A DNA stretch of 64,000 nucleotides from Macrostomum lignano (lineage: Eukaryota): the NCBI GenBank assembly GCA_002269645.1, contig NIVC01001115.1, positions 249,403 to 313,402 of the forward strand. Direction: 5' to 3'. The notes beneath the pieces were generated by a model, which was not told the origin of the DNA, searched no databases, and saw only the letters and a program-made list of their open reading frames with translations. Both the position numbers and the translations under genes were made by a program. This document shows positions 27,310 through 56,700 of the stretch, piece after piece (within the stretch, counting starts at the first letter, position 1; each line of letters begins with the position of its first letter).

Positions 27310-29071
27310 GCCCCGAAGAGGGTGTGGTGACTCTGCGAATCCCGCGGAGGGGCCAACATCTAACGAGGAGGCGGGCCCTGCATGCCGATCGGAAGCGTCA
27401 GGTGTCGCCGAAGCTCCGGCCTGATGCGGCTGGCTCCTCGTGTGGAGGGGACCTCGGAAACTCCCATGGCCGCTCCCAGCGCACCTATGCGGCTATGGCC
27501 AAGAGACAACCGGCCCTGATCATCCAAGGCCAGGAGAAGCCTCTAATGGCTGAAAAGCTCGACCAAATCTGGCGCAAGTTGGACTCCCACTTGGTCAAAG
27601 ATGGCCTTGACCGAGTAATCTAAGTCCTAAAGACGAATTAAGTCGAGGACCACGCCCTTCGACAGCCCTTCGACAGTCGCCCGCCGATAGCCAGTTTAGG
27701 CAGCAGCTCCTAGAGATGCTGAAGGCCTTCGACTGGGATACGGAGCTGGAAAACCTGTTTATCTACAGGAAGGACGAGCGACCCCGGACTCACCGGCACC
27801 GTGCCTGGATTCCGGCTCGCAGTTCCATCACCAAGGCCGACGAGCTGCGTCGCCTGCTAGTTAGTGGCTACCAATCCGGAGCTGCCGGCAAATGGCGTCG
27901 TAGTTCACGAGACTATCTCCAAGCCGGGCGGAGACGGTTTCACGGTAATCCTCGGACTGTCGGATAGCTGGATCTTTGGACTATCCGGACATGTCCCTCA
28001 TCTCTGTCGGGCTGTTCAGATCTTCAGCATTGAGTCTGACGCCACCCGCCCACCGCCCCAGAGAAGCGTAAACGGGCGAGTGGAATTGCTCTGACGGGCG
28101 GAAACGCTTAGGAAAAGAATTGCTTCCGTTCGTCACGACCCCTCCGAGGACGTGGACCCCGTCAGGGGGAAAGCCGCGAAAGCTGCAGCAACAGGCGGAC
28201 GTGGAAAGGGCCGGAAACCCGCCCGGAACACTATCCGCTCTGGTCTGACTCAGCGCTCGAAGCAGCTGCTGGACACCGCCAGGGCCCACAACCGCAGCAA
28301 CGGCCCCAGCCCAGTGTCACCACTGCGGCCCCCCGGAAAACCGGGCCGAGAGCGAGAATGCCGCCCTGGTGGAGGCATCGCCCTAGACCATGGAGACAAT
28401 CCGGGAGGAGCCCATGGTACTGAAGCCTGGAGCTATCGGCGAGGCAGAAGATTCGGCTCTCCTGCACAACTGCCTTGAGCCGGCAGGAAGCTGCGCGGAC
28501 CACTCGTGGATTCCCCAGAGTGGATCCCTGGCGATGGCCCCGCGGTTCCACCCAACCTCATCTAGGTTCGAGCTGCTGGTGGCGGGTGACGTCAACGCTC
28601 ACCACACCAACTGGGGCAGTAATACTTCCAACAGCAGAGGCGAGGAACTCCTTGCTTACATCTGCACCACCAATACTGAGTTTTGCAACATTGGTGGAAC
28701 CCCCACCTTTGACAACGGGCGATGGACGGAGGCCCTCGACGTTACCCTCGTCTTCCATGGCTTGGCTCCTTTAGTCAAGGACTGGGAGGTTTGGGACGAA
28801 GAGGAATCTCTGTTTGACCATCGCTTCGTTCGTTTTCGGTTGCAATACTCTTTCCCCAAACCTAGCATCCTGTGGAAAAGGAACGTCCAGAACACTGACT
28901 GGACGGCTTTCGCAGAAACCCTGAAATGCCAGACAGATCAGCTCACCACCGTCGCTCCAACCACCTGTTAGGTAGTGGATGACTTTGCCGACCTGCTTAG
29001 CAAGACCGTCCTGGCAGCACACAAGGCCTTCTGTCCTCTCAGGGCCTACTAAGGCACAAAATCCGCCCCTT
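27310..29071 (+). mobile_element. Degenerate non-LTR retrotransposon (LOA/I-group-like), 5' part: ORF1 remnants plus APE endonuclease
   Basis: Endonuclease motifs AGDVNAHHTNWGS..NSRGEELL..NIGGTPTF...LDVTL...DHRFVRF (28390-28971). Upstream fragments (RAWIP, TNPELPANGVVVH...VILGLSD) resemble DUF4780-type LINE ORF1. Stops and frameshifts present. Confidence 0.85.
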
Positions 29072-32735
<3,664 letters not shown>

Positions 32736-33990
32736 CCCTTGGTGGCACCCGGCGCTTGGATCCCTCCGACACAAGGCAAAGTGCCTTCAACGAAAAGCTC
32801 GCACGAGCAAGGACCCAGCTGACCTGGCCGCTTATCTGGATGCAATTCGCGACTTTAAGTGTGAAACCAGGAAAGCCAAGTCCGACAAATGGCGCTAATA
32901 CTGCGCGGAGTTAGAAGGCACCCGCCCTACTTCACGCGTGGTCAAGGCTCTCACCCTCAACAAAATGTCTAAGCTCTCAGTCATTAAAAGACTGGACGGC
33001 CAGCTCGCTGAGAACCCTGGGGAATCGCTGGACATCATGCTCACCAGCTCTTTCCCACGTGCCGCACCGCAGCTAGGCCCATCGGACCACTCTCGGGCGG
33101 ACAGATCCTGGCTTCGACCATCATTACCAGGGAGAGGACGTCTCGCACTTCCTTCAATCCTTCTCTCCATTCAAGTCACTGGGACCTGACAAAATTTATC
33201 CTGACAAAAAATGACAGGTTTCCCGGGCTCCTCTGCAACTTTTTCAAGGCCAGCATTACCATCGGGTACGTGCCTAAAGCTTGGCAAGAGGCCACGGTAG
33301 TCTTCATACCCAAACCAGGGAAGGGAGACTATCATTCTTCCATTCTTCATTTTTCATTCTTCAATCTTCATTCTTCAAAGCTTACCGCCTCATCAGTCTG
33401 ACGTCTTTCTTCCTCAAACTGATGGAACCGCTGGTGGTCTGGCGTCTCCTTCTCGTGGAGCTGAGGAACTCCCCGCACTCCCCAACCAGTACGCCTTTCG
33501 TCCTGGACGCTCCGTCGAAAGTCGAAAGTCGAAAATCAAAACGTCGGCTATGCGGACGATGTTACCGCCACATGTTACCGATGCAGCGATGGCTGGACCA
33601 TCACCCGCGGTCCTCAGAGACCTCCTTCAAGCCTTCATCCATCGTGCCGAACGCTGGGCACACGTCCGCGGCCTCAGGTTTTCTGAGTCTAAAACCGTGG
33701 CTATCATGTTCACCAGCCGCCAAAACTGCATGTAGGATCAAACCGCTCCCCCTCTATGGCAAACCCGTTGCCATGGAGAAACAAACCATATTACTGGGCG
33801 TCACCTTCGACCACAGGTTGAGCTGGACCCCACACGTCTGAACCAAAGCCCGCAAAGCTCTCTCGACTCTCAAGCAGATCCGCATAGCTTTCGACGCTAC
33901 CTGGGCCTCACCCCCACCGCCTCTGGTGGATTTACACTACCATCGTGAGACCGCGGCCATCTCCTTCGCCGGCTTCATCTGAAACAGCTG
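32736..33990 (+). mobile_element. 3' continuation of the host LINE (RT remnants with internal deletion)
   Basis: Resumes in frame as (SAP)[10 protein letters not shown], then LEGTRPTSRVVKAL, VVFIPKPGKGDY, LISLTSFFLKLME, NQYAFRPGRS, F.ESKTVAIMFT and LLGVTFDHRLSWTPHV. The RT catalytic core is missing. Confidence 0.85.
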
Positions 33991-36166: not shown

Positions 36167-39100
36167 TCAAGCGAAGTACTCTTGAGTAGCGGCTTGCGTA
36201 TAAATCACCTTCTTTCCGCCGTTGCTACCGTTAGAGAAACCGACTGAGCCGCCGCCGCCGGCGCCGACGCCAGGGCGACCAGTGGAAACGCCGTTCGTTT
36301 TGTAGGATCCACCGCTGGCTTTCCGAGACCGATAGATGCAGAACATGGCCAGCAGGGCCACCAGCAGGAGGCAGCCGACTCCGCCAGCGATCGCGGCGGC
36401 TAGGACCCCTGGCGAGGACAGCAGGCTGGCCGCTGACAGCTGTTGCTGTTGCTGCTGCTGGTTGTCAGTGCCAGAGTTGGCGCCGTCAGACTCGTTCTGT
36501 TGATGCTGCTGCTGACCGTTCCGATCTGACGGGCTCTCTGTTGGTTTAGTGTTTATGAAAATATGTGTTTGATGTCCATAGTATGAAGTGTTTCTTGTAG
36601 GTTTTTTAGTCACTATATTCGCAGGAGGGCTGCGGGCAACCCAGCGCAACGCTTTCATCGATATTCTGCCCATTCCGCTGACTCCTGGGCACATACAACC
36701 GTGACAATTCTGTACGCAGGCACGCACTCATGCACACGCTCACATAGGGTGCACAGTGGCCCTGACTTTCTAATCGTCAGGCATGTGCACTCTCTGTGCC
36801 TTGAGAATCTCAGTTTGATTGTCTATGGCCCACAGATGTCAAGGGCTTTCAAGCTATGGAGAAGAGCGCATGGTTTATAGCAGATTCTCAGTTTGATTGT
36901 CTATGGCCCACAGATGTCAAGGGCTTTCAAGCTATGGAGAAGAGCGCATGGTTTATAGCAGATTCTCAGTTTGATTGTCTATGGCCCAGAGATGTCAAGG
37001 GCATTCAAGCCAAGGAGAAGAGCACATAGCCTATAGCAGATTCTCAGTTTGATTGTCTATGGCCCACAGATGTCAAGGGCTTTCAAGCTATGGAGAAGAG
37101 CGAATGGTTTATAGCAGATTCTCAGTTTGATTGTCTATGGCCCACAGATGTCAAGGGCTTTCAAGCTATGGAGAAGAGCGCATGGTTTATAGCAGATTCT
37201 CAGTTTGATTGTCTATGGCCCACAGATGTCAAGGGCATTCAAGCTATGGAGAAGAGCGCATGGTTTATAGCAGATTCTCAGTTTGATTGTCTATGGCCCA
37301 CAGATGTCAAGGGCTTTCAAGCTATGGAGAAGAGCGCATGGTTTATAGCAGATTCTCAGTTTGATTGTCTATGGCCCACAGATGTCAAGGGCATTCAAGC
37401 TATGGAGAAGAGCGCATGGTTTATAGCAGATTCTCAGTTTGATTGTCTATGGCCCACAGATGTCAAGGGCTTTCAAGCTATGGAGAAGAGCGCATGGTTT
37501 ATAGCAGATTCTCAGTTTGATTGTCTATGGCCCACAGATGTCAAGGGCTTTCAAGCTATGGAGAAGAGCGCATGGTTTATAGCAGATTCTCAGTTTGATT
37601 GTCTATGGCCCAGAGATGTCAAGGGCATTCAAGCCAAGGAGAAGAGCACATAGCCTATAGCAGATTCTCAGTTTGATTGTCTATGGCCCACAGATGTCAA
37701 GGGCTTTCAAGCTATGGAGAAGAGCGAATGGTTTATAGCAGATTCTCAGTTTGATTGTCTATGGCCCACAGATGTCAAGGGCTTTCAAGCTATGGAGAAG
37801 AGCGCATGGTTTATAGCAGATTCTCAGTTTGATTGTCTATGGCCCACAGATGTCAAGGGCATTCAAGCTATGGAGAAGAGCGCATGGTTTATAGCAGATT
37901 CTCAGTTTGATTGTCTATGGCCCACAGATGTCAAGGGCTTTCAAGCTATGGAGAAGAGCGCATGGTTTATAGCAGATTCTCAGTTTGATTGTCTATGGCC
38001 CACAGATGTCAAGGGCATTCAAGCTATGGAGAAGAGCGCATGGTTTATAGCAGATTCTCAGTTTGATTGTCTATGGCCCACAGATGTCAAGGGCTTTCAA
38101 GCTATGGAGAAGAGCGCATGGTTTATAGCAGATTCTCAGTTTGATTGTCTATGGCCCACAGATGTCAAGGGCTTTCAAGCTATGGAGAAGAGCGCATGGT
38201 TTATAGCAGATTCTCAGTTTGATTGTCTATGGCCCACAGATGTCAAGGGCTTTCAAGCTATGGAGAAGAGCGCATGGTTTATAGCAGATTCTCAGTTTGA
38301 TTGTCTATGGCCCACAGATGTCAAGGGCTTTCAAGCTATGGAGAAGAGCGCATGGTTTATAGCAGATTCTCAGTTTGATTGTCTATGGCCCACAGATGTC
38401 AAGGGCTTTCAAGCTATGGAGAAGAGCGCATGGTTTATAGCAGATTCTCAGTTTGATTGTCTATGGCCCACAGATGTCAAGGGCTTTCAAGCTATGGAGA
38501 AGAGCGCATGGTTTATAGCAGATTCTCAGTTTGATTGTCTATGGCCCACAGATGTCAAGGGCTTTCAAGCTATGGAGAAGAGCGCATGGTTTATAGCAGA
38601 TTCTCAGTTTGATTGTCTATGGCCCTGAGATGTCAAGGGCATTCAAGCCAAGGAGAAGAGCACATAGCCTATAGCAGATTCTCAGTTTGATTGTCTATGG
38701 CCCACAGATGTCAAGGGCTTTCAAGCTATGGAGAAGAGCGCATGGTTTATAGCAGATTCTCAGTTTGATTGTCTATGGCCCACAGATGTCAAGGGCTTTC
38801 AAGCTATGGAGAAGAGCGAATGGTTTATAGCAGATTCTCAGTTTGATTGTCTATGGCCCACAGATGTCAAGGGCATTCAAGCTATGGAGAAGAGCGCATG
38901 GTTTATAGCAGATTCTCAGTTTGATTGTCTATGGCCCACAGATGTCAAGGGCTTTCAAGCTATGGAGAAGAGCGCATGGTTTATAGCAGATTCTCAGTTT
39001 GATTGTCTATGGCCCAGAGATGTCAAGGGCTTTCAAGCTATGGAGAAGAGCGCATGGTTTATAGCAGATTCTCAGTTTGATTGTCTATGGCCCACAGATG

Positions 39101-42100
39101 TCAAGGGCTTTCAAGCTATGGAGAAGAGCGCATGGTTTATAGCAGATTCTCAGTTTGATTGTCTATGGCCCACAGATGTCAAGGGCTTTCAAGCTATGGA
39201 GAAGAGCGCATGGTTTATAGCAGATTCTCAGTTTGATTGTCTATGGCCCACAGATGTCAAGGGCTTTCAAGCTATGGAGAAGAGCGCATGGTTTATAGCA
39301 GATTCTCAGTTTGATTGTCTATGGCCCACAGATGTCAAGGGCTTTCAAGCTATGGAGAAGAGCGCATGGTTTATAGCAGATTCTCAGTTTGATTGTCTAT
39401 GGCCCACAGATGTCAAGGGCTTTCAAGCTATGGAGAAGAGCGCATGGTTTATAGCAGATTCTCAGTTTGATTGTCTATGGCCCTGAGATGTCAAGGGCAT
39501 TCAAGCCAAGGAGAAGAGCACATAGCCTATAGCAGATTCTCAGTTTGATTGTCTATGGCCCACAGATGTCAAGGGCTTTCAAGCTATGGAGAAGAGCGCA
39601 TGGTTTATAGCAGATTCTCAGTTTGATTGTCTATGGCCCACAGATGTCAAGGGCTTTCAAGCTATGGAGAAGAGCGCATGGTTTATAGCAGATTCTCAGT
39701 TTGATTGTCTATGGCCCACAGATGTCAAGGGCATTCAAGCTATGGAGAAGAGCGCATGGTTTATAGCAGATTCTCAGTTTGATTGTCTATGGCCCACAGA
39801 TGTCAAGGGCTTTCAAGCTATGGAGAAGAGCGAATGGTTTATAGCAGATTCTCAGTTTGATTGTCTATGGCCCACAGATGTCAAGGGCTTTCAAGCTATG
39901 GAGAAGAGCGCATGGTTTATAGCAGATTCTCAGTTTGATTGTCTATGGCCCACAGATGTCAAGGGCATTCAAGCTATGGAGAAGAGCGCATGGTTTATAG
40001 CAGATTCTCAGTTTGATTGTCTATGGCCCACAGATGTCAAGGGCTTTCAAGCTATGGAGAAGAGCGCATGGTTTATAGCAGATTCTCAGTTTGATTGTCT
40101 ATGGCCCACAGATGTCAAGGGCTTTCAAGCTATGGAGAAGAGCGCATGGTTTATAGCAGATTCTCAGTTTGATTGTCTATGGCCCACAGATGTCAAGGGC
40201 TTTCAAGCTATGGAGAAGAGCGCATGGTTTATAGCAGATTCTCAGTTTGATTGTCTATGGCCCACAGATGTCAAGGGCTTTCAAGCTATGGAGAAGAGCG
40301 CATGGTTTATAGCAGATTCTCAGTTTGATTGTCTATGGCCCACAGATGTCAAGGGCTTTCAAGCTATGGAGAAGAGCGCATGGTTTATAGCAGATTCTCA
40401 GTTTGATTGTCTATGGCCCACAGATGTCAAGGGCTTTCAAGCTATGGAGAAGAGCGCATGGTTTATAGCAGATTCTCAGTTTGATTGTCTATGGCCCACA
40501 GATGTCAAGGGCATTCAAGCCAAGGAGAAGAGCACATAGCCTATAGCAGATTCTCAGTTTGATTGTCTATGGCCCACAGATGTCAAGGGCTTTCAAGCTA
40601 TGGAGAAGAGCGAATGGTTTATAGCAGATTCTCAGTTTGATTGTCTATGGCCCACAGATGTCAAGGGCTTTCAAGCTATGGAGAAGAGCGCATGGTTTAT
40701 AGCAGATTCTCAGTTTGATTGTCTATGGCCCACAGATGTCAAGGGCATTCAAGCTATGGAGAAGAGCGCATGGTTTATAGCAGATTCTCAGTTTGATTGT
40801 CTATGGCCCACAGATGTCAAGGGCTTTCAAGCTATGGAGAAGAGCGCATGGTTTATAGCAGATTCTCAGTTTGATTGTCTATGGCCCACAGATGTCAAGG
40901 GCTTTCAAGCTATGGAGAAGAGCGCATGGTTTATAGCAGATTCTCAGTTTGATTGTCTATGGCCCACAGATGTCAAGGGCTTTCAAGCTATGGAGAAGAG
41001 CGCATGGTTTATAGCAGATTCTCAGTTTGATTGTCTATGGCCCACAGATGTCAAGGGCTTTCAAGCTATGGAGAAGAGCGCATGGTTTATAGCAGATTCT
41101 CAGTTTGATTGTCTATGGCCCACAGATGTCAAGGGCTTTCAAGCTATGGAGAAGAGCGCATGGTTTATAGCAGATTCTCAGTTTGATTGTCTATGGCCCA
41201 CAGATGTCAAGGGCATTCAGGCCACGGAGAAGAGCGCATGATTGATTGCAGATTCTCAGTTTGATTGTCTATGGCCCAGAGATGTCAAGGGCATTCAAGC
41301 CACGGAAAAGAGCGCATGGTTGATTGCAGATTCTTAGTTTGATTCTCAGAGGCAAGACTTCTGGGGAATTTCTATTATAGGTGCATCGATTACTTAAAAA
41401 ATAAATAATACAGCTAGCTATCTTACCGTTTGAACCTTGCCAACCTCCTTGTCCGCTGCCCTGTGTGCGATGAAAACAAAATATCAGGGTTTATTTTAAC
41501 TTAATGAAATCATCAACCCACCTCACTCTACTGTACTCTGATTGGCTGTCCAATAGATGTGAAATTAAAACGCAAATGACAATTTGAATTTCTTTCGAAC
41601 CAAAGTCTCAAATACGACCACCCCACTCCACTTTCTCACCCCTTACTCTGCGCTGATTAGCTAAGCAATAATATACTAAAAAAACTGCTTACAGCGGCTC
41701 TGCCAGGCTGGTCCGGTGCGTTGGAATCTACTGAACGATTCAGTTGATCTGAAAAGGATATATTGAGCATGGGTAGTTCTCACAGCATGTTTAATAGGTT
41801 AATTAGTGCATTTCGAATTGATATTGAACAGACATGGAGAGAATGGCTGATGGAGTGAGTAAGGAAGAGTGGTCGGGATATAGAGGGGGGAGGGGGCAGG
41901 GAGGGAAGAGGCAAAGAAGGAGAGAAGAGGAAAGAGGGAGAGCTGAAAGAGGGAGATGAGAGAGAGAGAGAGAGGGGAGAGGGAGGGATGAGAGGGAGAG
42001 ATGAGAGGGAGAGATGAGAGGGAGAGATGAGAGGGAGAGATGAGAGGGAGAGATGAGAGGGAGAGATGAGAGGGAGAGATGAGAGGGAGAGATGAGATGA

Positions 42101-45100
42101 GAGAGATGAGAGGGAGAGATGAGAGAGGGGAGAGGGGATGTGGAAGGGAGAGATGAGAGAGAGATGGGAGAGATGAGAAGGAGAAATGAGAGGCAGAGAT
42201 AAGAGAGAGATGAGAGAGGAGAGAGGGGTATGTGGGAGGGAGAGATGAGATAGATGAGAGGGAGAGATGAGAGGGAGAGATGAGAGGGAGAGATGAGAGA
42301 GGGGAGAGGGGATGTGGAAGGGAGAGATGAGAGAGAGATGGGAGAGATGAGAAGGAGAAATGAGAGGCAGAGATAAGAGAGAGATGAGAGAGGAGAGAGG
42401 GGTATGTGGGAGGGAGAGATGAGAGAGATGAGAGGGAGAGATGAGAGGGAGAGATGAGAGGGAGAGATGAGAGGGAGAGATGAGAGGGAGAGATGAGATG
42501 AGAGAGATGAGAGGGAGAGATGAGAGAGGGGAGAGGGGATGTGGAAGGGAGAGATGAGAGAGAGATGGGAGAGATGAGAGGGAGAGATGAGAGGGAGAGA
42601 TGAGAGGGAGAGATGAGAGGGAGAGATGAGAGGGAGAGATGAGAGGGAGAGATGTGAGGGAGAGATGGGAGGGAGAGATGGGAGAGATGAGAGGGAGAGA
42701 TGAGAGGGAGAGATGAGAGGGAGAGATGAGAGGGGGAGATGAGAGGGAGAGATGAGAGGGAGAAGAAAAGGAGAGGAGAGGAGAGAGGGAGAGAAGAGGG
42801 ATAAGGTGGAAAGGGATGCAATACCTTAAAGTGAACATAAGCGAAAAGACTGAAGCACAGAAAGGAGCAGAAGTCGGACAGAAGACACACCTTACTGGAA
42901 GGAATCGGATGGTACAGATGGTACAGATGGTACAGAAAAGGTCAATCTACAGAAAGCTCGCACAGTCAGCAGTCTCACCTTCTCTCCTAAACGCGTAGTG
43001 CCTGAGCGCCACTGGCATGCCCGCAAACTTCCGCGAGGCCACCCTGCTGTCCAGCAGCTGCTTGAGCTCCTGCACATCCCTGTCCAGGCTGGGCACGTGA
43101 CCGATTGAAGTGAGGCGAATGTCCGCAATCACCGAGCCGGGCCTGCATTGATTGGAGGATGTTGGGGATGTTGTTTTAACGAGTGACGCCTAATTGGATG
43201 CAAGTGACGCCTAATTGGATGCAAGTGACGCCTAATTGGGTGCAAGTGACGCCTAATTGGATGCAAGTGACGCCTAATTGGATGCAAGTGACGCCTAATT
43301 GGATGCAAGTGACGCTTAATTGAATGCAAGTGACGCCTAATTGGATGCAAGTGACGCCTAATTGGATGCAAGTGACGCCTAATTGGATGCAAGTGACGCC
43401 TAATTGGATGCAAGTGACGCCTAATTGGATGCAAGTGACGCCTAATTGGATGCAAGAGACGCCTAATTGGATGCAAGTGACGCCTAATTGGATGCAAGTG
43501 ACGCCTAATTGGATGCAAGTGACGCCTAATTGGATGCAAGTGACGCCTAATTGGATGCAAGTGACGCCTAATTGGATGCAAGAGACGCCTAATTGGATGC
43601 AAGTGACGCCTAGTTGGATGCAAGTGACGCCTAATTGGATGCAAGTGACGCCTAATTGGGTGCAAGTGACGCCTAATTGGGTGCAAGTGACGCCTAATTG
43701 GGTGCAAGTGACGCCTAATTGGATGCAAGTGACGCCTAATTGGATGCAGGCGTAGCCTATGCACATGGTGCAACGGTTCCTCTAGTCAAATAAAATTGGC
43801 ACCAACGCGTTTCAGAGCATCATTAGTAATCCAATTTTCGCTCATTTTACTATTAGTAGCATCATCAGCAGTACTATTCGAGTAGAAACCGTGTTTACTT
43901 AAAAAACTCATCTCCCGGAAAATTTATAGGCACAAAAATTTCTAAAAGCAAGTAGTAAAACTAATAGAAAGCCATGCAGCTATAATACAAAGAAAGGCGC
44001 AGTCAAAGCTCAAGCACAAAATACGCTAAGCGATATACATATATAGAGTTCACAATGTTCCCATTTGTAATTCTCCCAGTTAATTGCATACGGGGATTAA
44101 GAGAAGGGAAGAGGGAGAGGCAGAGAATGGGTCGAAACCGGAGACCTGCCGGGGCGACGATGAGGCAGAGCGCCAGCTTCCTCTAAATCCTCTTCATCCA
44201 GCCCTAGACAGGACCGGCAGCCCCCTAAACCACACCGCTCTTTACCAAAACGCGCAAACAAGCCCTTCTATTTAATTGAAGATTAGCACAACTGCACTCA
44301 TGTTGGGGAAGAGCGCTCTTGAGTGTGGCCCACCAGCCCTAAGCATTCGCTTCAATGATTGAAGAGCATGCAATTTGATTTCTTTGTGCGCGCCTTTTCT
44401 TCAAGCTCATGGCGTGAAGCAACGTATGGCAAACAATGTGGCGCCCCTGACACCCAGTGCGGCGCCCCTGACATCACAATGTGGCGCCCCTGACATCCCA
44501 ATGTGGCACCCATGACATCCCAATGTGGCACCCCTGACATCCCAATGTGGCACCCCTGACATCACAATGTGGCGCCCCTGACATCCCAATGTGGCGCTCC
44601 TGACATCCCAATGTGGCGCCCCTGACATCCCAATGTGGCGCCCCTGACATCCCAATGTGGCGCCCCTGACATCCCAATGTGGCGCCCTTGACATCCCAAT
44701 GTGGCGCCCCTGAAATCCCAATGTGGCGCCCCTGATACCCAGTGTGGCGCCCCTGACAACCCAATGTGGCGCCCCTGACAACCCAATGTGGCGCCCCTGA
44801 CGCCCAAGCTGGTACTCCTGATACCCAAGTTGGAACTCCTAAAACCTAAGTTGGCACTGCTGACACTCAAGCTGGCTCTCATGACACTTAAGCTGGCACT
44901 CCTGACACCCAAGCTGGCACTCCTGACACCCAAGCTGGCACTCCTGACACCCAAGCTGGCACTCCTGACACCCAAGCTGGCACTCCTGACATATTTGGCA
45001 CTCCTGACACCCAAGCTGGCACTCCTGACATATTTGGCACTCCTGACACCCAAGCTGGCACTCCTGACATATTTGGCACTCCTGACACCCAAGCTGGAAC

Positions 45101-47148
45101 TCCTGACGGTCGAATTTAGCCGAATTGTATTTGTATCACAAATTACAACCTTACTAATTCATAAAACCGGTTCCCATAACCGGGACACAATTAGAACTCC
45201 CACTCAAGGCAACGGAGACATGCGCCCCCCTCCAATGACCTTCTTTGTGCAGACAGACGCGCCATAGTATCATATAATCTATATCACCTCTTTCTATCCC
45301 TGAATCGATTCCAACCCTGAGATTTTGAATGCCATCTCGGATTAGCGTTGATCCCCCACCGCGCCCAGGCACCCCTGTTCCTTGACTCCGCAGACTCCGC
45401 ATCCGCATCCGCATCGGGACTCAGGGTGCTCCCCCTCCCCCTCTCTCTACTGTTCTGCCCACCGCCCACCCAAATCCCCTCTGCCTCAGCCTCACTGGAG
45501 CCACGCAGGAAGTCACTCACGCCTTCTCCTTCTTCAGCCTCCCGACCCCCCCCCGCGAGGAGTTTTGAGATCTGGGCATCGCAGGCGGACTCCATCGCTC
45601 TCCCTACAGGCAGCCAGCAATCCATCACAACAAGCACAATGGGAAAAGACTTTAGGCAGAGCCCCATCCATCCATCCATTCAGTTTCTTCTGCCAGTCTA
45701 AAGTCCCAATTCAATATGCACCAGCCCTCTTCCCTCACCCCTAACTACAGATTTGCTTGGGTTCAACGGCTATGAAATCAGCTTTTAGAAGCAGTTTTTG
45801 GATTGGCAGAATCCAGTAATGCTAGTGTTATTGTTAAGCAATGGCCTGCAAAACAGCTCCACCACTCTCGTGTAAGATAAGAAGTTGAATTTTTTTCACA
45901 AAAGCAATTTTGGAATTTCAGAAAGAGTTTCGTTACGATACGAGCGTGAACTCTGTGAACTCACTTGTAGCTGAGTCAGTATAGCTGACGTTGTAAGCAG
46001 TCTCTGACTATTGATGAACCATCTGACAGCCCGTGAAACAACTATCTGACACCCCGTGAAACAACTATCTGACACCCCGTGAAACAACTATTTGACACCC
46101 CATGAAACCATCTGACACCCCATGAAACCATCTGACACCCCATGAAACCATTTGACACCCCATGAAACCATCTGACACCCCATGAAACCATCTGACACCC
46201 AATGAAACCATCTGACACCGTATCTGTCTGAAACTAAGATAGAAGAGTCTGACATTCAAAAATCAGCTTTGCACCTGATTCCACCCTGCCTGACACCCCC
46301 AAGCACTCTTGACACTCCAAGAAACCGCATCACGCCCTACAACCTCGCTTACCATACCAATACCCCTGACACCCTAAAAACCTACCTGACCTGCAAAAGC
46401 TAGCCTGACACCCCTACCAACACGTGACATCCTATGAATTCATTTGACATCCCTATTGATACTGACTGACACCCCTATTGATACTGACTGACACCCCTTT
46501 TGATACTGACTGACAAGCCTATCGATACTGACTTACACCCCTTTTGATACTGACTGACACCCCTTTTGATACTGACTGACACCCCTGTTGATACTGACTG
46601 ACACCCCTGTTGATACTGACTGACACCCCTGTTGATACTGACTGACACCCCTGTTGATACTGACTGACACCTCTGTTGATACTGACTGACACCCCATTTG
46701 ATACTGACTGACACCCCTGTTGATGCTGACTGACACCCCTGTTGATGCTGACTGACACCCTCACCGACACGGCAGACTCACCGCAGCCGCAGAACTCTCG
46801 CCATCTGCCGGCCCTGGAACTCCCTAAACAGGCCATCCAGTTCTGCCTCGATTTTCTGAGCGAACTCGTGAAAACTCGCCGAGGACTGCCGCGCCATGGA
46901 CTCCTGCCAGTTCACCTCGAAGCCCAGGCTGACAGAGAAGGCGGCCGAGCTGCAGGACATTTTCTGACTGACGGACACCGCCGTGGCTTCAATCATTTCA
47001 CCTGTCAGAACGTCGACGCAGAAGCAGGCGCCGCTGCCGCACTGCAGGTCACGGTAGAGCTCCGGGCGTTGGGACTGGCAGATTGGGCGGTAGCGGAGAC
47101 CCTGCATGGTCTGGATGACCTGGTTGGGCTGATTGGAGCAGTTGCGAC
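36167..47148 (-). CDS. Sdc: Syndecan-like type I membrane proteoglycan with thyroglobulin type-1 and SEA domains. Exons 46782-47148, 42979-43142, 41693-41748, 41427-41460, 36167-36537
   Basis: Last exon: VLAAAIAGGVGCLLLVALLAMFCIYRSRKASGGSY...KKVIYTQAATQEYFA, matching the syndecan TM GxxxG, C1 RxxKxxxGSY and C2 EFYA pattern. Upstream exons are joined by phase-consistent GT..AG introns and encode six-Cys TY (RNC..YRPIC..LQC..ACFCVD..TG..SC) and SEA (..LRLR|PGSVIADIRL..) domains. Confidence 0.8.
36806..41340. repeat. 78-bp minisatellite, about 58 copies, filling the last intron of the syndecan-like gene
   Basis: Unit attctcagtttgattgtctatggcccacagatgtcaagggctttcaagctatggagaagagcgcatggtttatagcag. 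Source of the MEKSAWFIADSQFDCLWPTDVKGFQA ORFs. Confidence 0.99.
41880..42800. repeat. GA-rich (GATGAGAGGGAGA-like) repeat with an internal about 170-bp duplication
   Basis: Almost pure purine on the plus strand. The block ggggatgtggaaggg...gggtatgtgggaggg occurs twice. Confidence 0.95.
43183..43750. repeat. 21-bp minisatellite GTGACGCCTAATTGGATGCAA, about 27 copies
   Basis: Tandem array beginning about 40 nt from the acceptor at 43143. Confidence 0.97.
44437..45105. repeat. Two abutting minisatellites: 22-bp AATGTGGCGCCCCTGACATCCC grading into 21-bp GCACTCCTGACACCCAAGCTG
   Basis: Directly visible, with the transition at about 44790. Confidence 0.95.
46015..46760. repeat. CTGACACCC-core minisatellites: 20-bp CATCTGACACCCCATGAAAC (about 46015-46220) and 22-bp TGATACTGACTGACACCCCTGT (about 46450-46760)
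   Basis: Two arrays with a degenerate spacer that retains ctgacaccc words. Confidence 0.93.
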
Positions 47149-47206
47149 CTTTGGCGGGCGGTGGGGGAGTGATTGTTGAGTTTTTGGCTCAGAAGAAGCT
47201 CAGTCT

Positions 47207-48190
47207 GGCGCCATCAACATCCTAGATTTGGCGCCATCAATATACTAGATTTGGCGCCATCAATACATTAGCTCATAGATTTGGCTACATCAATATACTA
47301 GATTGGGCGCCATCAATAAACTAGATTTAGCGCCATCACTATCCTAGATTTGGCGCCATCACTATCCTAGATTTGGCGCCATCAATATCCTAGATTTAGC
47401 GCCATCACTATCCTAGATTTGGCGCCATCAATATCCTAGATTTGGCGCCATCAATATCCTAGATTTGGCGCTATCAACATCCTAGATTTGGCGCCATCAA
47501 TATACTAGATTTGGCGCCATCAATATACTAGATTTGGCGCCATCAATATACTAGATTTGGCGCCATCAATATACTAGATTGGGCGCCATCAATAAACTAG
47601 ATTTAGCGCCATCACTATCCTAGATTTGGCGCCATCAATATCCTAGATTTGGCGCCATCAATATCCTAGATTTGGCGCTATCAACATCCTAGATTTGGCG
47701 CCATCAATATACTAGATTTGGCGCCATCAATATACTAGATTTGGTGCCATCAATATCCTAGATTTGGCGCCATCAATATCCTAGATTTGGCGCTATCAAC
47801 ATCCTAGATTTGGCGCCATCAATATACTAGATTTGGCGCCATCAATATACTAGATTTGGTGCCATCAATATACTAGATATGGCGTCATCAATACATTAGC
47901 TCATAGATATGGCGTCATCAATACATTAGCTCATAGATTTGGCGCTATCAACATCCTAGATTTGGCGCCATCAATATACTAGATTTGGTGCCATCAATAT
48001 ACTAGATTTGGCGCCATCAATATACTAGATTTGGTGCCATCAATATACTAGATTTGGCGCCATCAATATACTAGATTTGGTGCCATCAATATACTAGATT
48101 TGGTGCCATCAATATACTAGATATGGCGTCATCAATACATTAGCTCATAGATTTGGCGCCATCAATATCCTAGATTTGGCGCCATCAGTA
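47207..48190. repeat. 23-bp minisatellite CTAGATTTGGCGCCATCAATATA, about 42 copies
   Basis: Directly visible tandem array. Confidence 0.97.
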
Positions 48191-48879
48191 TCCAAGATAC
48201 AGTATTCAATGTGACAAATTCCCAGAATCATATGCCTCATCAGCCGCAGCATCAATACAGCACCGAACAGTAGCCTGTTTTAGTGTCTGCATGCTTAGCC
48301 CCAAAGCCAACCCTATTGTGAGCCCCTCTATCTACTCTACTGAGTCCGTTGCCAAAAAGGCAGAAAAATAGCCATCAAAACCCCCCTCAGCCACTCCACT
48401 TCTAAGGCCCGACACCCACACGCAGCTGTCCACCCACCCGCCTACCAAGGGCTTCTACAGTGGCCCCCTGCATGCAGTTGATGCTTGAGTCCTAACCCTC
48501 TAGCTGTAACCCCCCCAGCACTCCGCGCCCCTCACAATCAGCGGGCTATGTCAACACAAAAGAGACTCTGCATGGCCTAAACTCAAAGTTCGTTGCAACT
48601 CAACACTGCAATGACCGACCAAAGGCCAAGCAAAACAAAAAAATGTTCTACGCAATTAATAAATATAGCGATGATGGGCCCAGACAAGAATTGATTCAGT
48701 TCGGTCTTAGCAGGAGACGAAAGTCTGCGTGCACCAGCAAGTCGAGGAGAGACCGACTGACTGCACAAGGGTGCGCCTGCGCATGGACGACTAATAGTCT
48801 AGTAGAAGCCTGGTTTGGAAAGCCGAGTTTGAGTTTCACGGGACTTTTATTTAACACAGGACAAGATTTTCCACTTAGA

Positions 48880-49298
48880 GGGGGCGCTATTTTTATTTTG
48901 AGACGGGCGCCATTTCATTTTGAGACGGGCGCCATTTCATTTTGAGACGGGCGCCATTTCATTTTGAGACGGGCGCCATTTCATTTTGAGACGGGCGCCA
49001 TTTCATTTTGAGACGGGCGCCATTTCATTTTGAGACGGGCGCCATTTCACTTTGAGACGGGCGCTATTTTCATTTTGAGACGGGCGCCATTTCATTTTGA
49101 GACGGGCGCCATTTCATTTTGAGACGGGCGCCATTTCATTTTGAGACGGGCGCCATTTCATTTTGAGACGGGCGCCATTTCATTTTGAGACGGGCGCTAT
49201 TTTCATTTTGAGACGGGCGCCATTTCATTTTGAGACGGGCGCTATTTTCATTTTGAGACGGGCGCCATTTCATTTTGAGACGGGCGCCATTTCATTTT
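48880..49298. repeat. 22-bp minisatellite TTTTGAGACGGGCGCCATTTCA, about 18 copies
   Basis: Directly visible tandem array. Confidence 0.97.
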
Positions 49299-49729
49299 AA
49301 GGGTCGATAGTTTTAATTTAAAACCAAATATTACTTCTGTAGTTGAGATGAGACTAATAAAAATCTTGATCATTATATATCTCCAGTTAACTAAACAGTC
49401 GTCTATCAATGAGCTTTCAAATCCAGATTCTATCCTAAGCAGTCCTTGGCTGTGTCAGGCAGTCAAAGCAATATGCTCCAGCTTAATAAGGCGAATGGGT
49501 TAAACAGCCGTGCCCCCGCGGGTGTGAGCCTGCCCTCTGACTCGCTCATTTTACTCGGAGTTCATTGTGCGGTTTAAATGAAGAACGAAATTTAAAAATG
49601 CAAAACAAAACTTGTGAGCCTTGGAAACTTCGCAACTTGGCTTGACTGTGTAATGGAAATGATTTGTTGGAAATTTAATCTTTTCGTTAACGCATTGGTG
49701 GTGGCTGTTCTGCTTTGGACTCATTTAAT

Positions 49730-50235
49730 CCTAATTTGGCACTGCATTCAATTTTTTTTGCGCCCATTTCAATCTTAATTTGGTGCCACTTTTATATCGT
49801 AATTTGGCGCCTTTTTCAATCTTAATTTAGCGATACTTTCAATCTTAATTTGGCGCCTCTTTCAATCTTAATTTAGCATCAATGTTAAGACTTAATTTGG
49901 TGCCACTTTTATATCGTAATTTGGCGCCTATTTCAATCATAATTTGTCGCCACCTTCAAACTTAATTTAGCGCTATGTTAAGACTTAATTTGGCGCCACT
50001 TTTATATCGTAATTTGGCGGCCATTTCAATCTTAATTTGGCGCCACTTTTAAACTCAATTTAGCGCTACTTTCAATCTTAATTTGGCGCCTTTTTCAATC
50101 CCTATTTGGCGCCTCTTTCAATCTTAATTTGGCGCCCATTTCAATCTTAATTTGGTGCCCATTTCAATCTTAGTTTGGCGCCACTTTTATATTTTAATAT
50201 CTTATATCTTTAATTTTATCGGCGCCACTTTAGCG
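49730..50235. repeat. Degenerate 22-24-bp array AATCTTAATTTGGCGCCACTTTC-like
   Basis: About 20 diverged units sharing taatttggcgcc. Confidence 0.88.
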
Positions 50236-50482
50236 CCACTTTCAGATCTGATTTGTCCAACCCTTATAATAATAATTTCGACACCCTATAGTCTAATTTG
50301 ACACCATAAACTTGAATGCTGCGCCATTGAAATCAATATTGGCGCCTATCTATCCAGTTTGGCGCCACCTCCCATCCCACCCGCTTTTCTTGGCTTCATC
50401 TCCCAGCCGATCCGCTGCCAAAACAGCCTTGGTGCAGGGGTGCGCTATCAGCTTGCCAATCAGAGTGCAACCGGGGCCTTAC

Positions 50483-53119
50483 TGTTCCCGAAGCCGACAG
50501 CCTCCCACGCTGATTAGGGAAGGCCAGGGAGATGGGCGCATCTTTGGCCCAGCCAGCCAGCTTTAATACCCTGTGAATGCCGCGGAGAGAAATCTCTCAG
50601 ACCGTCAGCAGAATTTCTGTGTTTTTTCTCTCTCTCACAACTGTTTCGCTAACTAATTCACTGCGGTGAGGCTATAGGCTGCACATTGGTCAGGTCAACC
50701 TCTACTATCTCGCCCGAGAGCTGAACTTGCTCTGAGGAATAGGCAGACACAGACGGGCAGACAGGTTAGGCAGCCGAAGCTATTACAATATTTTTATCAG
50801 AGAGGCTCAATGTAGCTGGTATTTTTTTAACGCTACAGCTCCAACAACGCAGAAGGTTTTATAGTCCCTACATGTAGGGCCTGGTGCGCGATAATGCAGT
50901 TAAAAATTTTCAGTATATATTATACTGTCTCACAGAGGCCTGCTGATTGCTACTTCAACAAATTCTTTTAGCTTATAGCTATCAATTTTCTGTCTACCCT
51001 CTCCCACTGTAAACTCTGTATCCCCCCCCTGCCGCAGCGGAATAATGTGCCGACAAATTAATTGACATTGGCAACGGTGCCGCGCTACCCCCGGCTAAAC
51101 TCCTATACAATCTTATTCTATTGCTTTGGCAAAGGCAAGCCGCCGCCACGGCCCACCTCCCCTAATCCTCCTTGACAGCATCATTCTGGATGCCTGACAG
51201 GTGGAGAGAGGCTGGGCATCCCGACCCATTCAGCCCACCCGCCTCTCTGCACAGTGATAAATCAATTATTAGATTTTTTTATATAGATCCATTGCTAACA
51301 AACTGCTGGGGTATTTATTGGCTCGGAGCCTCTACATCAATATATATCCTTATACATAGGAAGCAAGTATTTCCTTGTTGTTCCCAGAAACATTCAATTT
51401 GCCATGAGGACATAACTAAATTTTCTATATGCACTGTTTTATTGAATAGCTAATAAAATAATTTTGTTTTTCCAACAATTTTACGACCTCCAATAGAAAT
51501 ATTATTGATCTCGGCATCAATGCGAATGGGGAGATATCTAGCTGATAATGGTTGTAGAATTTGGCAATTCGATTCTATGGCCACACCTCACTTTACCCGA
51601 TGATGTTTTCACTGTCTATGGCCACAATTCACTTTACCCGATGGAGTTTTTACTGTCTATGGCAACACTTCACTTTACCCGATGATGTTTTCACTGTCTA
51701 TGGCCACACTTCACTTTACCCGATGATTTTTTCACTGTCTATGGCCACACTTCACTTTACCCGATGAAGTTTCACTGTTTATGGCCACAATTCATTTTAA
51801 TCGATGGAGTTTCATTGTCTATGGCCACACATCACTTTACCCAATGGAGTTTTACTGTCTATGGCCACGCATCACTTTACCCGATAGAGTTTCACTGTTT
51901 ATGGCCATAATTCATTTTACCCGATGGAGTTTCACTGTCTATGGCCACACCTCACTTTACCCGATGGAGTTTCATTGTCTATTGTCACACCTCACTTTAC
52001 CCAATGGAGTTTTACTGTCTATGGCTACACCTCACTTTACCCAATGGTGTTTCACTGTCTATGGCTACACCTCACTTTACCCAACAGAGATTAACTCAAA
52101 AGCTACGCACCATTGTTGGCCGGCGTCGGCCTAGGCTGCCACGGCTGCCAGGGCTTTGCCGTCGACGTACGGGCAACAGGCAGTTCTATGCGTACAGTCG
52201 GCCGCTGGGTCCAAGGACCCCCCACGGTGGCATTCGGCTGGTGCGGCGCGGGCGGCCAGGCATCGCCGGACGAGGCGCCACCGAGGGGCCCCAATGGCCA
52301 AGGCCGGTCACCGCTTGCACCGCCGGCTTTGGCCACCGCCAGGTCCTCGTCGTCGCTGGTTGACGCGTCCGGTGGGCGAGGCGGCGGCTGCGGCGGCGGC
52401 GCCAAGCCTGACGTGGCGCCTCCGCCAGGTCCGGGGCTCTTGAAATTGTTTTCGTCAGTCAAATTGCGTTAAATTGGTAATTTTTTGGCTTCTTAGAAAA
52501 TATCTATTTTGCATGTAAGGCTAATTATGGTGAAAGATAATACACTGGATGTTAATTGGAAGAAAAGTGAATTAAGTACGAGTAAGTAAAAATCATATTT
52601 TATTAATGTATTAATTCAAAGCTAAGCTTAAAAATGCTAAATACTTTTTGTTTCTTTTTTAGTACTTTAGCTAAGCCACTATACACTGAAGCTATGCTAA
52701 TAAACTAAGGCAAAAGCTTTAGTCCATATCGAGGATCAGTCAGTCGTATGTTCATTCTTTACCCCAGACGTAATGCTAGGATATATATTTTTGTTTTAAG
52801 CCAACGACAATAAAATTTATTGAAGCAGACTTTAACAGTAATAGTTAAAAACCTGCCTGAATTTTTTAGAAAATAAAATAATATTTTATTTATTAAAAGA
52901 CTAAGGGAAAAGTATTATTTTTTTACCGAAATACATTTTAATGTTTAATGACATTATAAGATTGTTGCGTTCAATTAAAACTGCTACTTTTTAATAAAAC
53001 TTATGCAAGCTTAAGCTTATACATTTTTTGAACATTTTTTGAACACTTAAATAATTTTCAACTCATTTATTAACTTACCAGCTTGGGTAGCATTCGCAGT
53101 GGTGGCAGCGTGGCAGGTC
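50483..53119 (-). CDS. Probable N-terminal ectodomain exons of the syndecan-like gene: 53079-53119, 52111-52438, 50483-50509
   Basis: Phases chain 1>0, 0>1 and 1>1 into the TY exon (phase 1). The 52.1-52.4 kb exon is Pro/Gly-rich with Ser-Gly sites near acidic residues (ATSG, DASTSDDEDL, ASGD, SSGD), as in glycosaminoglycan attachment regions. The 27-nt exon has a strong ctaatcag acceptor and gtaagg donor. The signal-peptide exon is not securely identified. Confidence 0.5.
51570..52085. repeat. About 40-bp minisatellite CTATGGCCACACCTCACTTTACCCGATGGAGTTTCACTGT-like, about 13 copies
   Basis: Diverged tandem array starting about 25 nt from the proposed donor at 52110. Confidence 0.93.
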
Positions 53120-53337
53120 CTAAACTACCAACAACGAATTGAAAGACAGTGACAAAAACCAGAAAAATAGGCGCTGCTAAATACATTTTTATTAAGAGTG
53201 GTAAAGTAAAATATTATATGTTAAAAACTGAGCTTCCTCTAAGTCTGGGTGTATTTATACTTGCTTATTTTCTCAAAGATCCTATAAACCAAAAATGAAA
53301 ATCTTGCTTGCTTGTGCCTTCACGCTTCTTAGTTTGA

Positions 53338-53742: not shown

Positions 53743-56700
53743 TCAACACTTTTCTCCAAAAAAATTCAATTGAGGAAATTCTTTCCTGGCATTGAAATAC
53801 AAGCTAGAGACATTCCGTTGTCGGGTCGCGAAACTACCGGAGGTTATGTGACGAAACTGATGAATGGCAAGAGTTGAGTTTTTGAGAAGTGATTGCTGAT
53901 AATTTCGCCCGGCCAGTGCTTCACAAATTGCTTTCAACGTGCTGTCAATCGGGTTCCGCATGCTCATGCTTTTCAAGCAAGCACTTTGAAAAGTTCCCGT
54001 CTGAACAATGTCAAAGCGAGGACTAAAAACATCTGGCTCAAACAAATGAACTTTACAAGTAAAGTTTTTGCTGCAAAGCTGACCACTTCTTTGTTGATTT
54101 CGATTCAATACTCGCTGCATTAGAAGCGGTCCAGTCACCTCTGGGGCATCCGAATTTTTTCGATGTATCCGTCCTCGTCCTGCAATTATCGATCGAAAAC
54201 GCCGGTGGCGAAGCGGATTGAAATACATGATAGATGGTCTGCCAGCCCTTCTCATAGCCGCAGTCTTCTCGGTTCCCGCCAGTAGACTATCGGCAATCGC
54301 GTGCACGGTGGCGTCAAAAAACGGATGACCGGGCGTGCTGAACATGACGGCGTTGGACACCAGCGAGTTGCGGCCGAACAGCAGTTTAGCGTGCTCAAGC
54401 GGCTCAGCGGCTAGCATGGCACCAGCGATCGGCTCGTCGAACAGATGCTCCAAGTTTCGAACCGGCTCGGTGTCCAGGTCCAGGTAAAGGCCGCCGAAGC
54501 TGCGCAGTGCCAGAACCCGAACAAGGTCGGAGCGTTCCAGCGACGTCTGCGCGGTCTGCAAGGCGGTAGCCAGCCGACTGCCGGGCCAGTAGAGCAGCCG
54601 CGTCAGGCAGGCGGCGTCTTCGTTGCGCCACAGCCAGAACGACATCGACGGATGCGTCGACAACCAGCGCCGCAGCAAAGGTCGATACTCGAGGCGCAGG
54701 TGCTCACTTCGAGCGGTGAAATGAATCAGACGCGGGAGCTTGTTGGCGATCTGCAGCTGCTCGTCAGCTGGCGACAAAAAACTTACGGCCGTTGCAGGTG
54801 TCAATGCGACTCTGGATTCTCTAAAATGATGAAAGACAATCGATCGTGACATCAACTGCGACTATATGACTCTGACTATGACTATGACTATGACTGACTA
54901 TGACTATGACTGACTATGACTATGACTTTGACTATGACTGACTATGACTGACTATGACTTTGACTATGACTGACTATGGCTATATGACTATGACTATGAC
55001 TGACTATGACTTTGACTATGACTGACTATGACTATGATGACTTTGACCATGACTGACTATGGCTATATGACTATGACTATGACTGACTATGACTTTGACT
55101 ATGACTGACTATTGACTATAACTGACTATGACTATATGACTATGAGTATGACTGACTATGACTATATGACTTTGACTATGACTGATTATGACTTTGACTA
55201 TGACTGACTATGAGTATGACTATGACTTTGACTATGACTGACTATGACTGACTATGACTTTGACTATGACTGACTATGGCTATATGACTATGACTATGAC
55301 TGACTATGACTTTGACTATGACTGACTATGACTATGATGACTTTGACCATGACTGACTATGGCTATATGACTATGACTATGACTGACTATGACTTTGAAT
55401 ATGACTGACTATGACTATGATGACTTTGACCATGACTGACTATGGCTATATGACTATGACTATGACTGACTATGACTTTGACTATGACTGACTGATTGAC
55501 TATAACTGACCATGACTAAATGACTATGAGTATGACTGACTATGACTATATGACTTTGACTATGACTGACTATGACTTTGACTATGACTTTGACTATGAC
55601 TGACTATGACTTTGACTATGACTGACTATGACTATGACTGACTATGGCTATATGACTATGAGTATGACTATGACTTTGACTATGACTGACTATGACTATG
55701 ACTTTGACTGTGACTGACTATGACTGACTATGACTGACTATGACTGACCATGACTTTGACAATGACTGACTATGGCTATATGACTATGACTATGACTGAC
55801 TATGACTTTGAATATGACTGACTATGACTATGATGACTTTGACCATGACTGACTATGGCTATATGACTATGACTATGACTGACTATGACTTTGACTATGA
55901 CTGACTATTGACTATAACTGACTATGACTATATGACTATGAGTATGACTGACTATGACTATATGACTTTGACTATGACTGACTATGACTTTGACTATGAC
56001 TGACTATGAGTATGACTATGACTTTGACTATGACTGACTATGACTATGACTTTGACTATGACTGACTATGACTGACTATGACTGACTATGACTGACTATG
56101 ACTGACTATGACTTTGACTATGACTGACTATGGCTATATGACTATGACTATGACTGACTATGACTTTGAATATGACTGACTATGACTATGATGACTTTGA
56201 CCATGACTGACTATGGCTATATGACTATGACTATGACTGACTATGACTTTGACTATGACTGACTATTGACATAACTGACTGAGACTATATGACTTTGATT
56301 ATGACTGACTATGACTTTGACTATGACTGACTATGACTTTGACTATGACTGACTATGGCTATGACTATGACTGACTATGGCTATATGACTATGAGTATGA
56401 CTATGACTTTGACTATGACTGACTATGACTATGACTTTGACTATGACTGACTATGACTATGACTTTGACTATGACTGACTATGACTGACTATGACTTTGA
56501 CTATGACTGACTATGACTGACTATGACTGACTATGACTGACTATGACTATGACTGACTATATGACTATGACTTTGACTATGACTATGACTTTGACTATGA
56601 CTGACTATGACTATGACTGACTATGGCTATATGACTATGAGTATGATTGACTATGACTATGACTATGACTATGACTATGACAATGACTGACTATGACTGA

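Follow-up and report, generated by a model that had tools for sequence, protein, structure and literature searches.

In a 64,000-nucleotide (nt) stretch of the genome of the flatworm Macrostomum lignano (assembly GCA_002269645.1, contig NIVC01001115.1, positions 249,403 to 313,402; hereafter the window, counted from its first letter), the locus at 53186-36167 on the minus strand is, as we judge with good confidence, a seven-exon gene for a diverged flatworm syndecan paralog, a type I membrane protein that would work in the manner proposed below. Its exons splice to a 1428-nt open reading frame (ORF) of 475 amino acids (aa). A preliminary description of this DNA, made from the letters alone, had claimed that a continuous minus-strand frame could be spliced across introns full of tandem repeats, and had given the order of its parts as a Ser-Gly, acidic and Pro-rich region, a six-Cys thyroglobulin type-1 (TY) module, a SEA domain, a GSG linker and a syndecan transmembrane segment with its tail; both the frame and the order were found as claimed. 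Its remark that the ORF track never shows one protein is correct for the raw ORF list, but the spliced protein was already annotated in GenBank.

Gene model and domain order

Exon ends were set at canonical AG/GT sites on the minus strand, and the phases were then checked. All junctions of the seven-exon model were GT-AG and in frame. The product was 100% identical, at the same length, to GenBank PAA72080.1 (UniRef A0A267FE73), which is recorded as 'hypothetical protein BOX15_Mlig009419g1' of Macrostomum lignano (gene Mlig009419.g1) and carries the UniRef label 'Thyroglobulin type-1 domain-containing protein'. The exons and the protein parts that they encode are, in order of transcription:

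53186-53079, minus strand: exon 1, ATG at 53186-53184, aa 1-36, with the signal peptide MYLAAPIFLVFVTVFQFVVGSLG; donor gtaagt
52438-52111, minus strand: exon 2, aa 37-146, Pro-rich and probably disordered; ends in phase 1 and joins 47148 directly
47148-46782, minus strand: exon 3, TY module and N-terminal half of the SEA domain
47146-46952, minus strand: TY module in exon 3, aa 147-211, with six Cys and the motifs QC and CFCV (CWCV-type)
46951-46782, minus strand: rest of exon 3, aa 212-268, N-terminal half of the SEA domain (beta1-alpha1-beta2)
43142-42979, minus strand: exon 4, aa 268-323, C-terminal half of the SEA domain (beta3-alpha2-beta4), then the S-x-G-H motif
41748-41693, minus strand: exon 5, aa 323-341, stalk DQLNRSVDSNAPDQPGRAA; kept with its GT-AG sites in the homeolog L005
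41460-41427, minus strand: exon 6, a micro-exon, aa 342-353, stalk GSGQGGWQGSN with one Ser-Gly (SG) site
36537-36413, minus strand: first part of exon 7, aa 353-394, Gln-rich juxtamembrane stalk
36412-36332, minus strand: transmembrane helix in exon 7, aa 395-421, PGVLAAAIAGGVGCLLLVALLAMFCIY
36331-36167, minus strand: cytoplasmic tail in exon 7, aa 422-475, and the stop codon TGA at 36169-36167

Four junctions of the preliminary description (46782/43142, 42979/41748, 41693/41460 and 41427/36537) kept the frame at canonical GT-AG sites. The fifth, 50483/47148, was wrong, since the reading frame shifts there and runs into a stop codon; the real junction is 52111/47148, where the phase 1 end of exon 2 forms a Gly codon with 47148. 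As a candidate exon, the 88-nt piece 50570-50483 was rejected: it gives '...PANNGY*', shifts the TY exon out of frame and has no counterpart in PAA72080.1. The extent claimed before, 36167-53119, was right at its lower end, but the coding sequence ends at 53186, and exon 1 (53186-53079) with its junction 53079/52438 had been overlooked. The exon 1 product matched the N-terminus of PAA72080.1 exactly and had a Kyte-Doolittle window above 1.6 over aa 1-27. Only two hydrophobic segments were present in the whole protein, aa 1-27 and aa 395-421, the second followed by a tail of 54 aa, which is type I topology.

The three domain calls were borne out by Pfam, with Syndecan (PF01034) at 34.1 bits against a gathering threshold (GA) of 25.2 (E=2.7e-8, aa 390-433), SEA (PF01390) at 30.0 bits against a GA of 26.4 (E=5.9e-7) and Thyroglobulin_1 (PF00086) at E=1.1e-3, below its GA. 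No Cys occurs in the ectodomain beyond the six that make up the TY pattern (C149, C169, C182 in LQC, C187 and C189 in CFCVD, C211), so that the type 1A six-Cys pattern with QC and CWCV-type motifs is present. When a profile of the TY and SEA region built from flatworm relatives (A2) was run against the Protein Data Bank (PDB), the TY domains of saxiphilin, IGFBP2, thyroglobulin and thyropin were returned, with E down to 3.5e-6. N-terminal to the module, exon 2 encodes an acidic stretch, TSDDEDL, and SGD twice (S78, S93), both being candidate glycosaminoglycan (GAG) sites; with a further SG site in an acidic context in the exon 7 stalk (ESDGANSGTD), the candidate GAG motifs of the protein are DDED...ASGD, SSGD, GSGQ and ANSGTD. 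The DDED and SG arrangement aligned with that of a M. lignano paralog, P0003 (GSGSGSG...LDDEDL...ASGD).

The SEA fold was recovered from an AlphaFold2 (AF2) model covering aa 144-321 (pLDDT 75.9, pTM 0.65), which showed the SEA order beta-alpha-beta-beta-alpha-beta; the strands and the helix of the N-terminal half were E68-79, H93-110 and E116-125 in fragment numbering. Foldseek matched the model to SEA structures, among them 2e7v (TMt 0.62, root-mean-square deviation (rmsd) 2.4 A), MUC16 and TMPRSS6, with entries including 7sa9 and 8gkl_E. Residues G270-S271 (43138-43133) lie in RPG/SVIAD, in the beta2-beta3 hairpin that is the site of SEA autoproteolysis elsewhere. The stretch RVLRLRPGSVIA aligned to QVTQFRNGSIVA of the ADGRF1 SEA domain, with FRNG-SIVA opposite RPG-SVIA, and the N-terminal chain of the PDB entry 8hc0_B ends at ...FRNG, precisely at the aligned Gly. 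MUC1, matriptase and ADGRF1/GPR110 share the motif G/S[VI][VI]x in this hairpin of a juxtamembrane SEA domain, with different flanking domains. In matriptase and MUC1 the Gly-Ser bond is cleaved spontaneously and the halves stay together (PMC5567652, PMC7349879), and we infer a similar cleavage for the flatworm protein, whose SEA domain is probably self-cleaving, as judged from its motif. After the hairpin, S280 and G282 of the S-x-G-H motif were invariant in 10 flatworm sequences.

At the C-terminal end, the transmembrane helix carries a syndecan-type (A/G)xxxGG dimerisation motif, conserved in the alignment of relatives (A1), and VLAAAIAGGVG aligned to VLAAVIAGGVIG of the syndecan-2 transmembrane structure 6ith. 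Behind it come, in turn, a C1 region that has diverged (RSRKASGGSY), a V region rich in Gly and the C2-like end KKVIYTQAATQEYFA. Canonical flatworm tails in the same alignment read R(L/I)RK(K/A)DEGSY...REFYA, and the C-terminal ends of the relatives were EFYA, EYYA or EFFA.

Syndecan relatives in flatworms and other phyla

A second genomic copy of the gene (L005, Mlig006431g1) was 97% identical and kept all seven exons and their GT-AG sites, with different intron lengths. The two copies differed by 15 synonymous and 10 non-synonymous changes, and the resulting ratio of non-synonymous to synonymous rates (dN/dS), 0.22, fits purifying selection between the two sequences, the counts being small. 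The paralog Mlig001759g1/g2 (P0003, 445 aa), whose gene spans about 89 kb (L002 10001-99198), has GSGSGSG, a TY-like module, a SEA domain (24 bits) and the tail DEGSY...REFYA (Syndecan 61.5 bits). A further type is represented by two older models, each covering a fragment, which brings the syndecan paralog types of M. lignano to three or more (Mlig009419/006431, Mlig001759 g1/g2 and the split type); the SEA domain is present in all three. As a side observation, the window holds an ORF for V-ATPase proteolipid subunit c (16579-16971, minus strand; ATP-synt_C 118 bits), and the Mlig001759 locus is likewise adjoined by an ATP-synt_C gene (L002 2-385), which may trace a segmental or whole-genome duplication.

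Relatives were obtained by an exhaustive phmmer search, with 75 matches; a word-indexed search with the part from TY to tail returned the protein alone. 'Syndecan' proteins of Fasciola, Paragonimus and Taenia and a Schistosoma protein scored 21-29 bits for Thyroglobulin_1, above GA, and 69-77 bits for Syndecan, and they were collinear with the M. lignano protein, sharing the TY module and the region after it with the S-x-G-H motif. In these parasitic species the Gly-Ser turn of the SEA domain is replaced by an insertion of variable length (A1, columns ~350-410) and S-x-G-H is kept; judged from the alignment, SEA self-cleavage was probably lost in Neodermata.

Beyond flatworms, one sequence, P0041 (L001 86-1324), encodes SG sites, a TY module (59 bits), a SEA-like 'RPGSVIVD' and a canonical tail (97 bits) in one ORF on a contig of 1499 nt that is probably transcript-derived, and it was collinear with the M. 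lignano protein over aa 147-282 (E 2e-7). It was the only non-flatworm sequence found with the full order of TY, SEA and syndecan tail. A search seeded with it returned more than 100 proteins; the pair PF00086+PF01034 was usual in molluscs, annelids, a brachiopod and nemerteans, many of them already named syndecan, and the arthropod matches had PF01034 only. Thyroglobulin_1 reached 70-128 bits in molluscs. The M. lignano TY module itself had its highest scores with the TYs of flatworm syndecans; the membrane-proximal TY2 of two-TY syndecans consistently came second. Examples of lophotrochozoan TY syndecans are THD22510.1 (Fasciola hepatica), KAL5971890.1 (Taenia solium), K1PIE7 (Magallana gigas), the Lingula anatina 'syndecan-4' XP_013402199.1 and the M. 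lignano paralog PAA65095.1. Shared with them are the signal peptide, the acidic and SG-containing N-terminal region, one or more ectodomain TYs and the syndecan transmembrane segment and tail, whereas the SGGSY of C1, the EYFA of C2, the Gly-rich V insert and the lack of an SGSG cluster set the protein of the window apart. Mollusc and annelid syndecans have one or two TYs without SEA.

SEA domains have been reported in some echinoderm syndecans (PMC10381214, a 2023 review), and the Eupentacta fraudatrix sequence in its supplement scored 51.9 bits for SEA and 63.6 bits for Syndecan. The mid-ectodomain SEA of the echinoderm proteins (E. fraudatrix, Apostichopus japonicus; PMC10381214) shares the G-S-[VIL] motif, but these proteins have no TY. 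A phmmer search with the SEA domain of the M. lignano protein alone gave no significant match to echinoderm syndecan SEAs or to the parasitic flatworm orthologs, generic multi-SEA proteins ranking higher, and the ectodomain profile A2 returned cestode and trematode fragments only, with no wider distribution of SEA. Vertebrate and ecdysozoan syndecans (SDC1-4, Drosophila Sdc, C. elegans SDN-1) share the GG-motif transmembrane helix, the basic C1 and the C-terminal aromatic-aromatic-Ala; they keep exact DEGSY and EFYA, and their ectodomains have no Pfam-detectable folded module. The statement that canonical syndecan ectodomains lack folded domains thus applies to vertebrates and ecdysozoans, but not to lophotrochozoans (TY), flatworms or echinoderms (SEA).

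Because TY with a Syndecan domain is common in lophotrochozoans, the TY and the stretch after it recur in flatworm orthologs, and SEA-containing syndecans of echinoderms have been published, the architecture is, on these sequence comparisons, a feature inherited within the lineage and not the product of a fresh shuffle. The TY module comes from the lophotrochozoan syndecan lineage. The earlier label of a 'domain-shuffled syndecan' is accordingly given up.

Weighing of the readings and proposed mode of action

Several points weigh against the assignment as a diverged syndecan paralog that works like one. The TY module missed its gathering score (18.8 bits against 20.6), and pLDDT was below 50 over residues 1-21 of the AF2 fragment, a part that contains the first TY cysteine. 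The match to the Syndecan hidden Markov model spans only profile positions 1-44 of 64. In C1, compared with R(M/L)(K/R)KKDEGSY, R422, R424, K425, G429, S430 and Y431 are kept and the acidic DE pair is replaced by SG; the protein ends in QEYFA, where aromatic-aromatic-Ala is kept and the exact EFYA motif is absent. The SGSG cluster of the paralog is replaced by GGGATSG in the N-terminal region, and because that region has no such cluster, GAG substitution, as far as the motifs can tell, may be weak or absent. The motif GS[VI][VI] is necessary, not sufficient, for SEA cleavage. The evidence for expression consists of the deposited annotation and of the selection seen between two copies, which was estimated from just 25 differences.

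Some of these points would suit a neofunctionalised paralog, that is, a receptor or adhesion molecule that displays TY and SEA at the cell surface, bears hardly any GAG chains or none, and engages new partners in the cytoplasm, which we think unlikely but worth keeping in mind. The change from SGSGSG in P0003 to GGGATSG, by which only two SGD and two stalk SG sites are left, speaks for it, as do the SGGSY and EYFA variants, the Gly-rich insert in the V region and a Syndecan score of 34 bits against 61-97 in relatives. However, the transmembrane dimerisation motif and the terminal aromatic-aromatic-Ala are retained, and both homeologs keep these features at a dN/dS of 0.22. The DDED and SGD context also resembles accepted attachment contexts of heparan sulfate, such as the perlecan-type SGD, which counts against a protein without GAG chains. 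In the favoured reading too, the gene has lost the canonical DEGSY and EFYA that Mlig001759 keeps, and with C1 and C2 so altered the intracellular partners may therefore differ.

The preliminary description had also seen a likeness to the ectodomain layout of EpCAM, and at the level of architecture this stands. The EpCAM ectodomain 4mzv was the top Foldseek match in the PDB (E 4.5e-4, probability 0.99, 190 columns over TY and SEA), and the entry 6i07 was also among the matches. EpCAM and Trop2 (GA733) consist, like the protein of the window, of a type-1A TY, a SEA-type alpha/beta domain that adjoins it without a gap, a single transmembrane segment and a short tail, and the C-domain of EpCAM is accepted as a SEA-type fold directly after TY (PMC7349879). 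A further claim, that the gene is a relic linking the two architectures through a homologous TY-SEA-transmembrane cassette, found no link in sequence, and we regard it as very improbable. The alignment of 4mzv to the AF2 model had TM-scores of 0.36/0.28, an rmsd of 14 A and an identity of 12%, and no EpCAM or Trop2 was found at E<=10 among PDB sequences in either the single-sequence search or the search with the TY and SEA profile, which returned the other TY proteins named above. The Cys-rich N-domain of EpCAM is absent, there being no Cys before TY in a Pro-rich, low-complexity region, and EpCAM has no GAG region, no GS motif in its SEA domain (PMC7349879) and an unrelated transmembrane segment and tail. 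Since each of TY and SEA is a mobile module of wide occurrence, convergence is plausible. By any test run, the gene is not an EpCAM relative. A broader proposal deserves hardly more credence: the cassette of flatworm syndecans and P0041 would be ancestral, so that syndecans of early bilaterians, or at least of early spiralians, had a folded juxtamembrane ectodomain that cleaves itself; vertebrates and ecdysozoans would have lost it, and EpCAM/Trop2 would have obtained the cassette by descent or capture.

Recent shuffling in Macrostomum, by which TY and SEA exons were placed into an unstructured syndecan, could appeal to the fact that TY and SEA lie on exons of their own with long repeat-rich introns before the tail exon. 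It is nevertheless already contradicted by the occurrence of TY with Syndecan across molluscs, annelids, brachiopods, nemerteans and parasitic flatworms, by the affinity of the TY module to flatworm syndecan TYs and then to TY2, by the S-x-G-H region after TY in all flatworm sequences and by the SEA domain in every M. lignano paralog type, and we consider it extremely improbable. We give just as little weight to a chimera of two neighbours, of which one would encode a secreted TY/SEA protein and the other the syndecan tail. Mis-joins do occur in this genome: an older UniProt model, A0A1I8GC35 (789 aa), seems to have merged this gene in error with the glycosyltransferase upstream of it. However, the same collinear architecture is shared by the paralog, by the homeolog, whose splice sites are conserved, and by parasitic flatworms; it also stands on single short contigs, probably transcript-derived (P0041 on 1499 nt and, for SEA, transmembrane segment and tail, P0016 on 1398 nt), and between the SEA and transmembrane exons there is neither a stop codon nor an alternative start.

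For a diverged syndecan paralog the following working mode can be proposed. The protein would enter the secretory pathway, where heparan or chondroitin sulfate may be added on the SG sites. Its SEA domain would then cleave itself at G270/S271 during folding, as in MUC1, matriptase and ADGRF1, and the N-terminal piece bearing GAG and TY would be held non-covalently on the membrane stub, to be released by force or by further proteolysis. The transmembrane helix would dimerise via its GG motif, and the C-terminal Y-F-A may be recognised by class II PDZ domains of the syntenin/CASK type. For the TY module, ligand binding or inhibition of a cysteine protease is conceivable, functions that other TY domains have.

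Repeats, neighbouring genes and significance

Nearly each intron of the gene holds its own satellite of 13-44 bp, and the last intron is mostly filled by a longer array:

36804-41344, no strand assigned: tandem array in the last intron, 78 bp x 58 copies, 97% matches
41936-42798, 43182-43748, 44434-45107 and 46445-46760: other intronic arrays
47206-48198, 48882-49298, 49727-50189 and 51574-52082: further intronic arrays

Long intronic ORFs, including plus-strand ones of 180-320 aa from the 78-bp array, were rejected as artefacts of repeat translation. Directly upstream of the gene lies a DXD glycosyltransferase in a single ORF (53743-54855, minus strand; Pfam Gly_transf_sug 35 bits). The UniProt entry A0A1I8GC35 ('Gb3_synth domain-containing'), which clustering at 90% groups with the syndecan-like protein, appears to fuse both genes. 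On the other side, a degraded non-LTR (long terminal repeat) retrotransposon occupies 28390-33841, with endonuclease, reverse transcriptase and RNase H in different minus-strand frames and further reverse-transcriptase-like ORFs on the plus strand. The C-terminal part of a protein kinase (4852-6204, minus strand; Pkinase 51.8 bits, profile positions 175-263) is encoded by an ORF that runs into a translated tandem repeat, and a FAM92-like fragment (13301-13738, minus strand; 23.4 bits against a GA of 23.6) possibly belongs to a different gene as one of its exons.

In reviews, the transmembrane, C1 and C2 regions are the sole features by which a syndecan is recognised. A thyroglobulin domain was unmentioned in the syndecan literature searched, reviews included, and no description of a TY/SEA architecture was found in the literature searched on syndecans of Macrostomum, other flatworms and molluscs or on syndecan together with thyroglobulin. 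Both the sequence and the domain labels assigned to it automatically were already public, TY syndecans are common in databases, and echinoderm SEA syndecans have been published; new to the literature is that flatworm syndecans combine TY with SEA, that the self-cleavage motif is intact and that M. lignano has several paralogs. Invertebrate bilaterians have been stated to possess a single syndecan (PMC8061687), and the paralog types of M. lignano, at least three in number, contrast with that statement.

In summary, our results show that a whole superphylum has TY modules in its syndecans; in flatworms a SEA domain joins them, its self-cleavage motif being intact. RNA interference and transgenesis are both feasible in M. 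lignano. Vertebrate syndecan ectodomains are shed by metalloproteases; if the SEA domain of the flatworm protein does cleave, its ectodomain would be released in the manner of mucins and matriptase, unlike the metalloprotease shedding of vertebrates.

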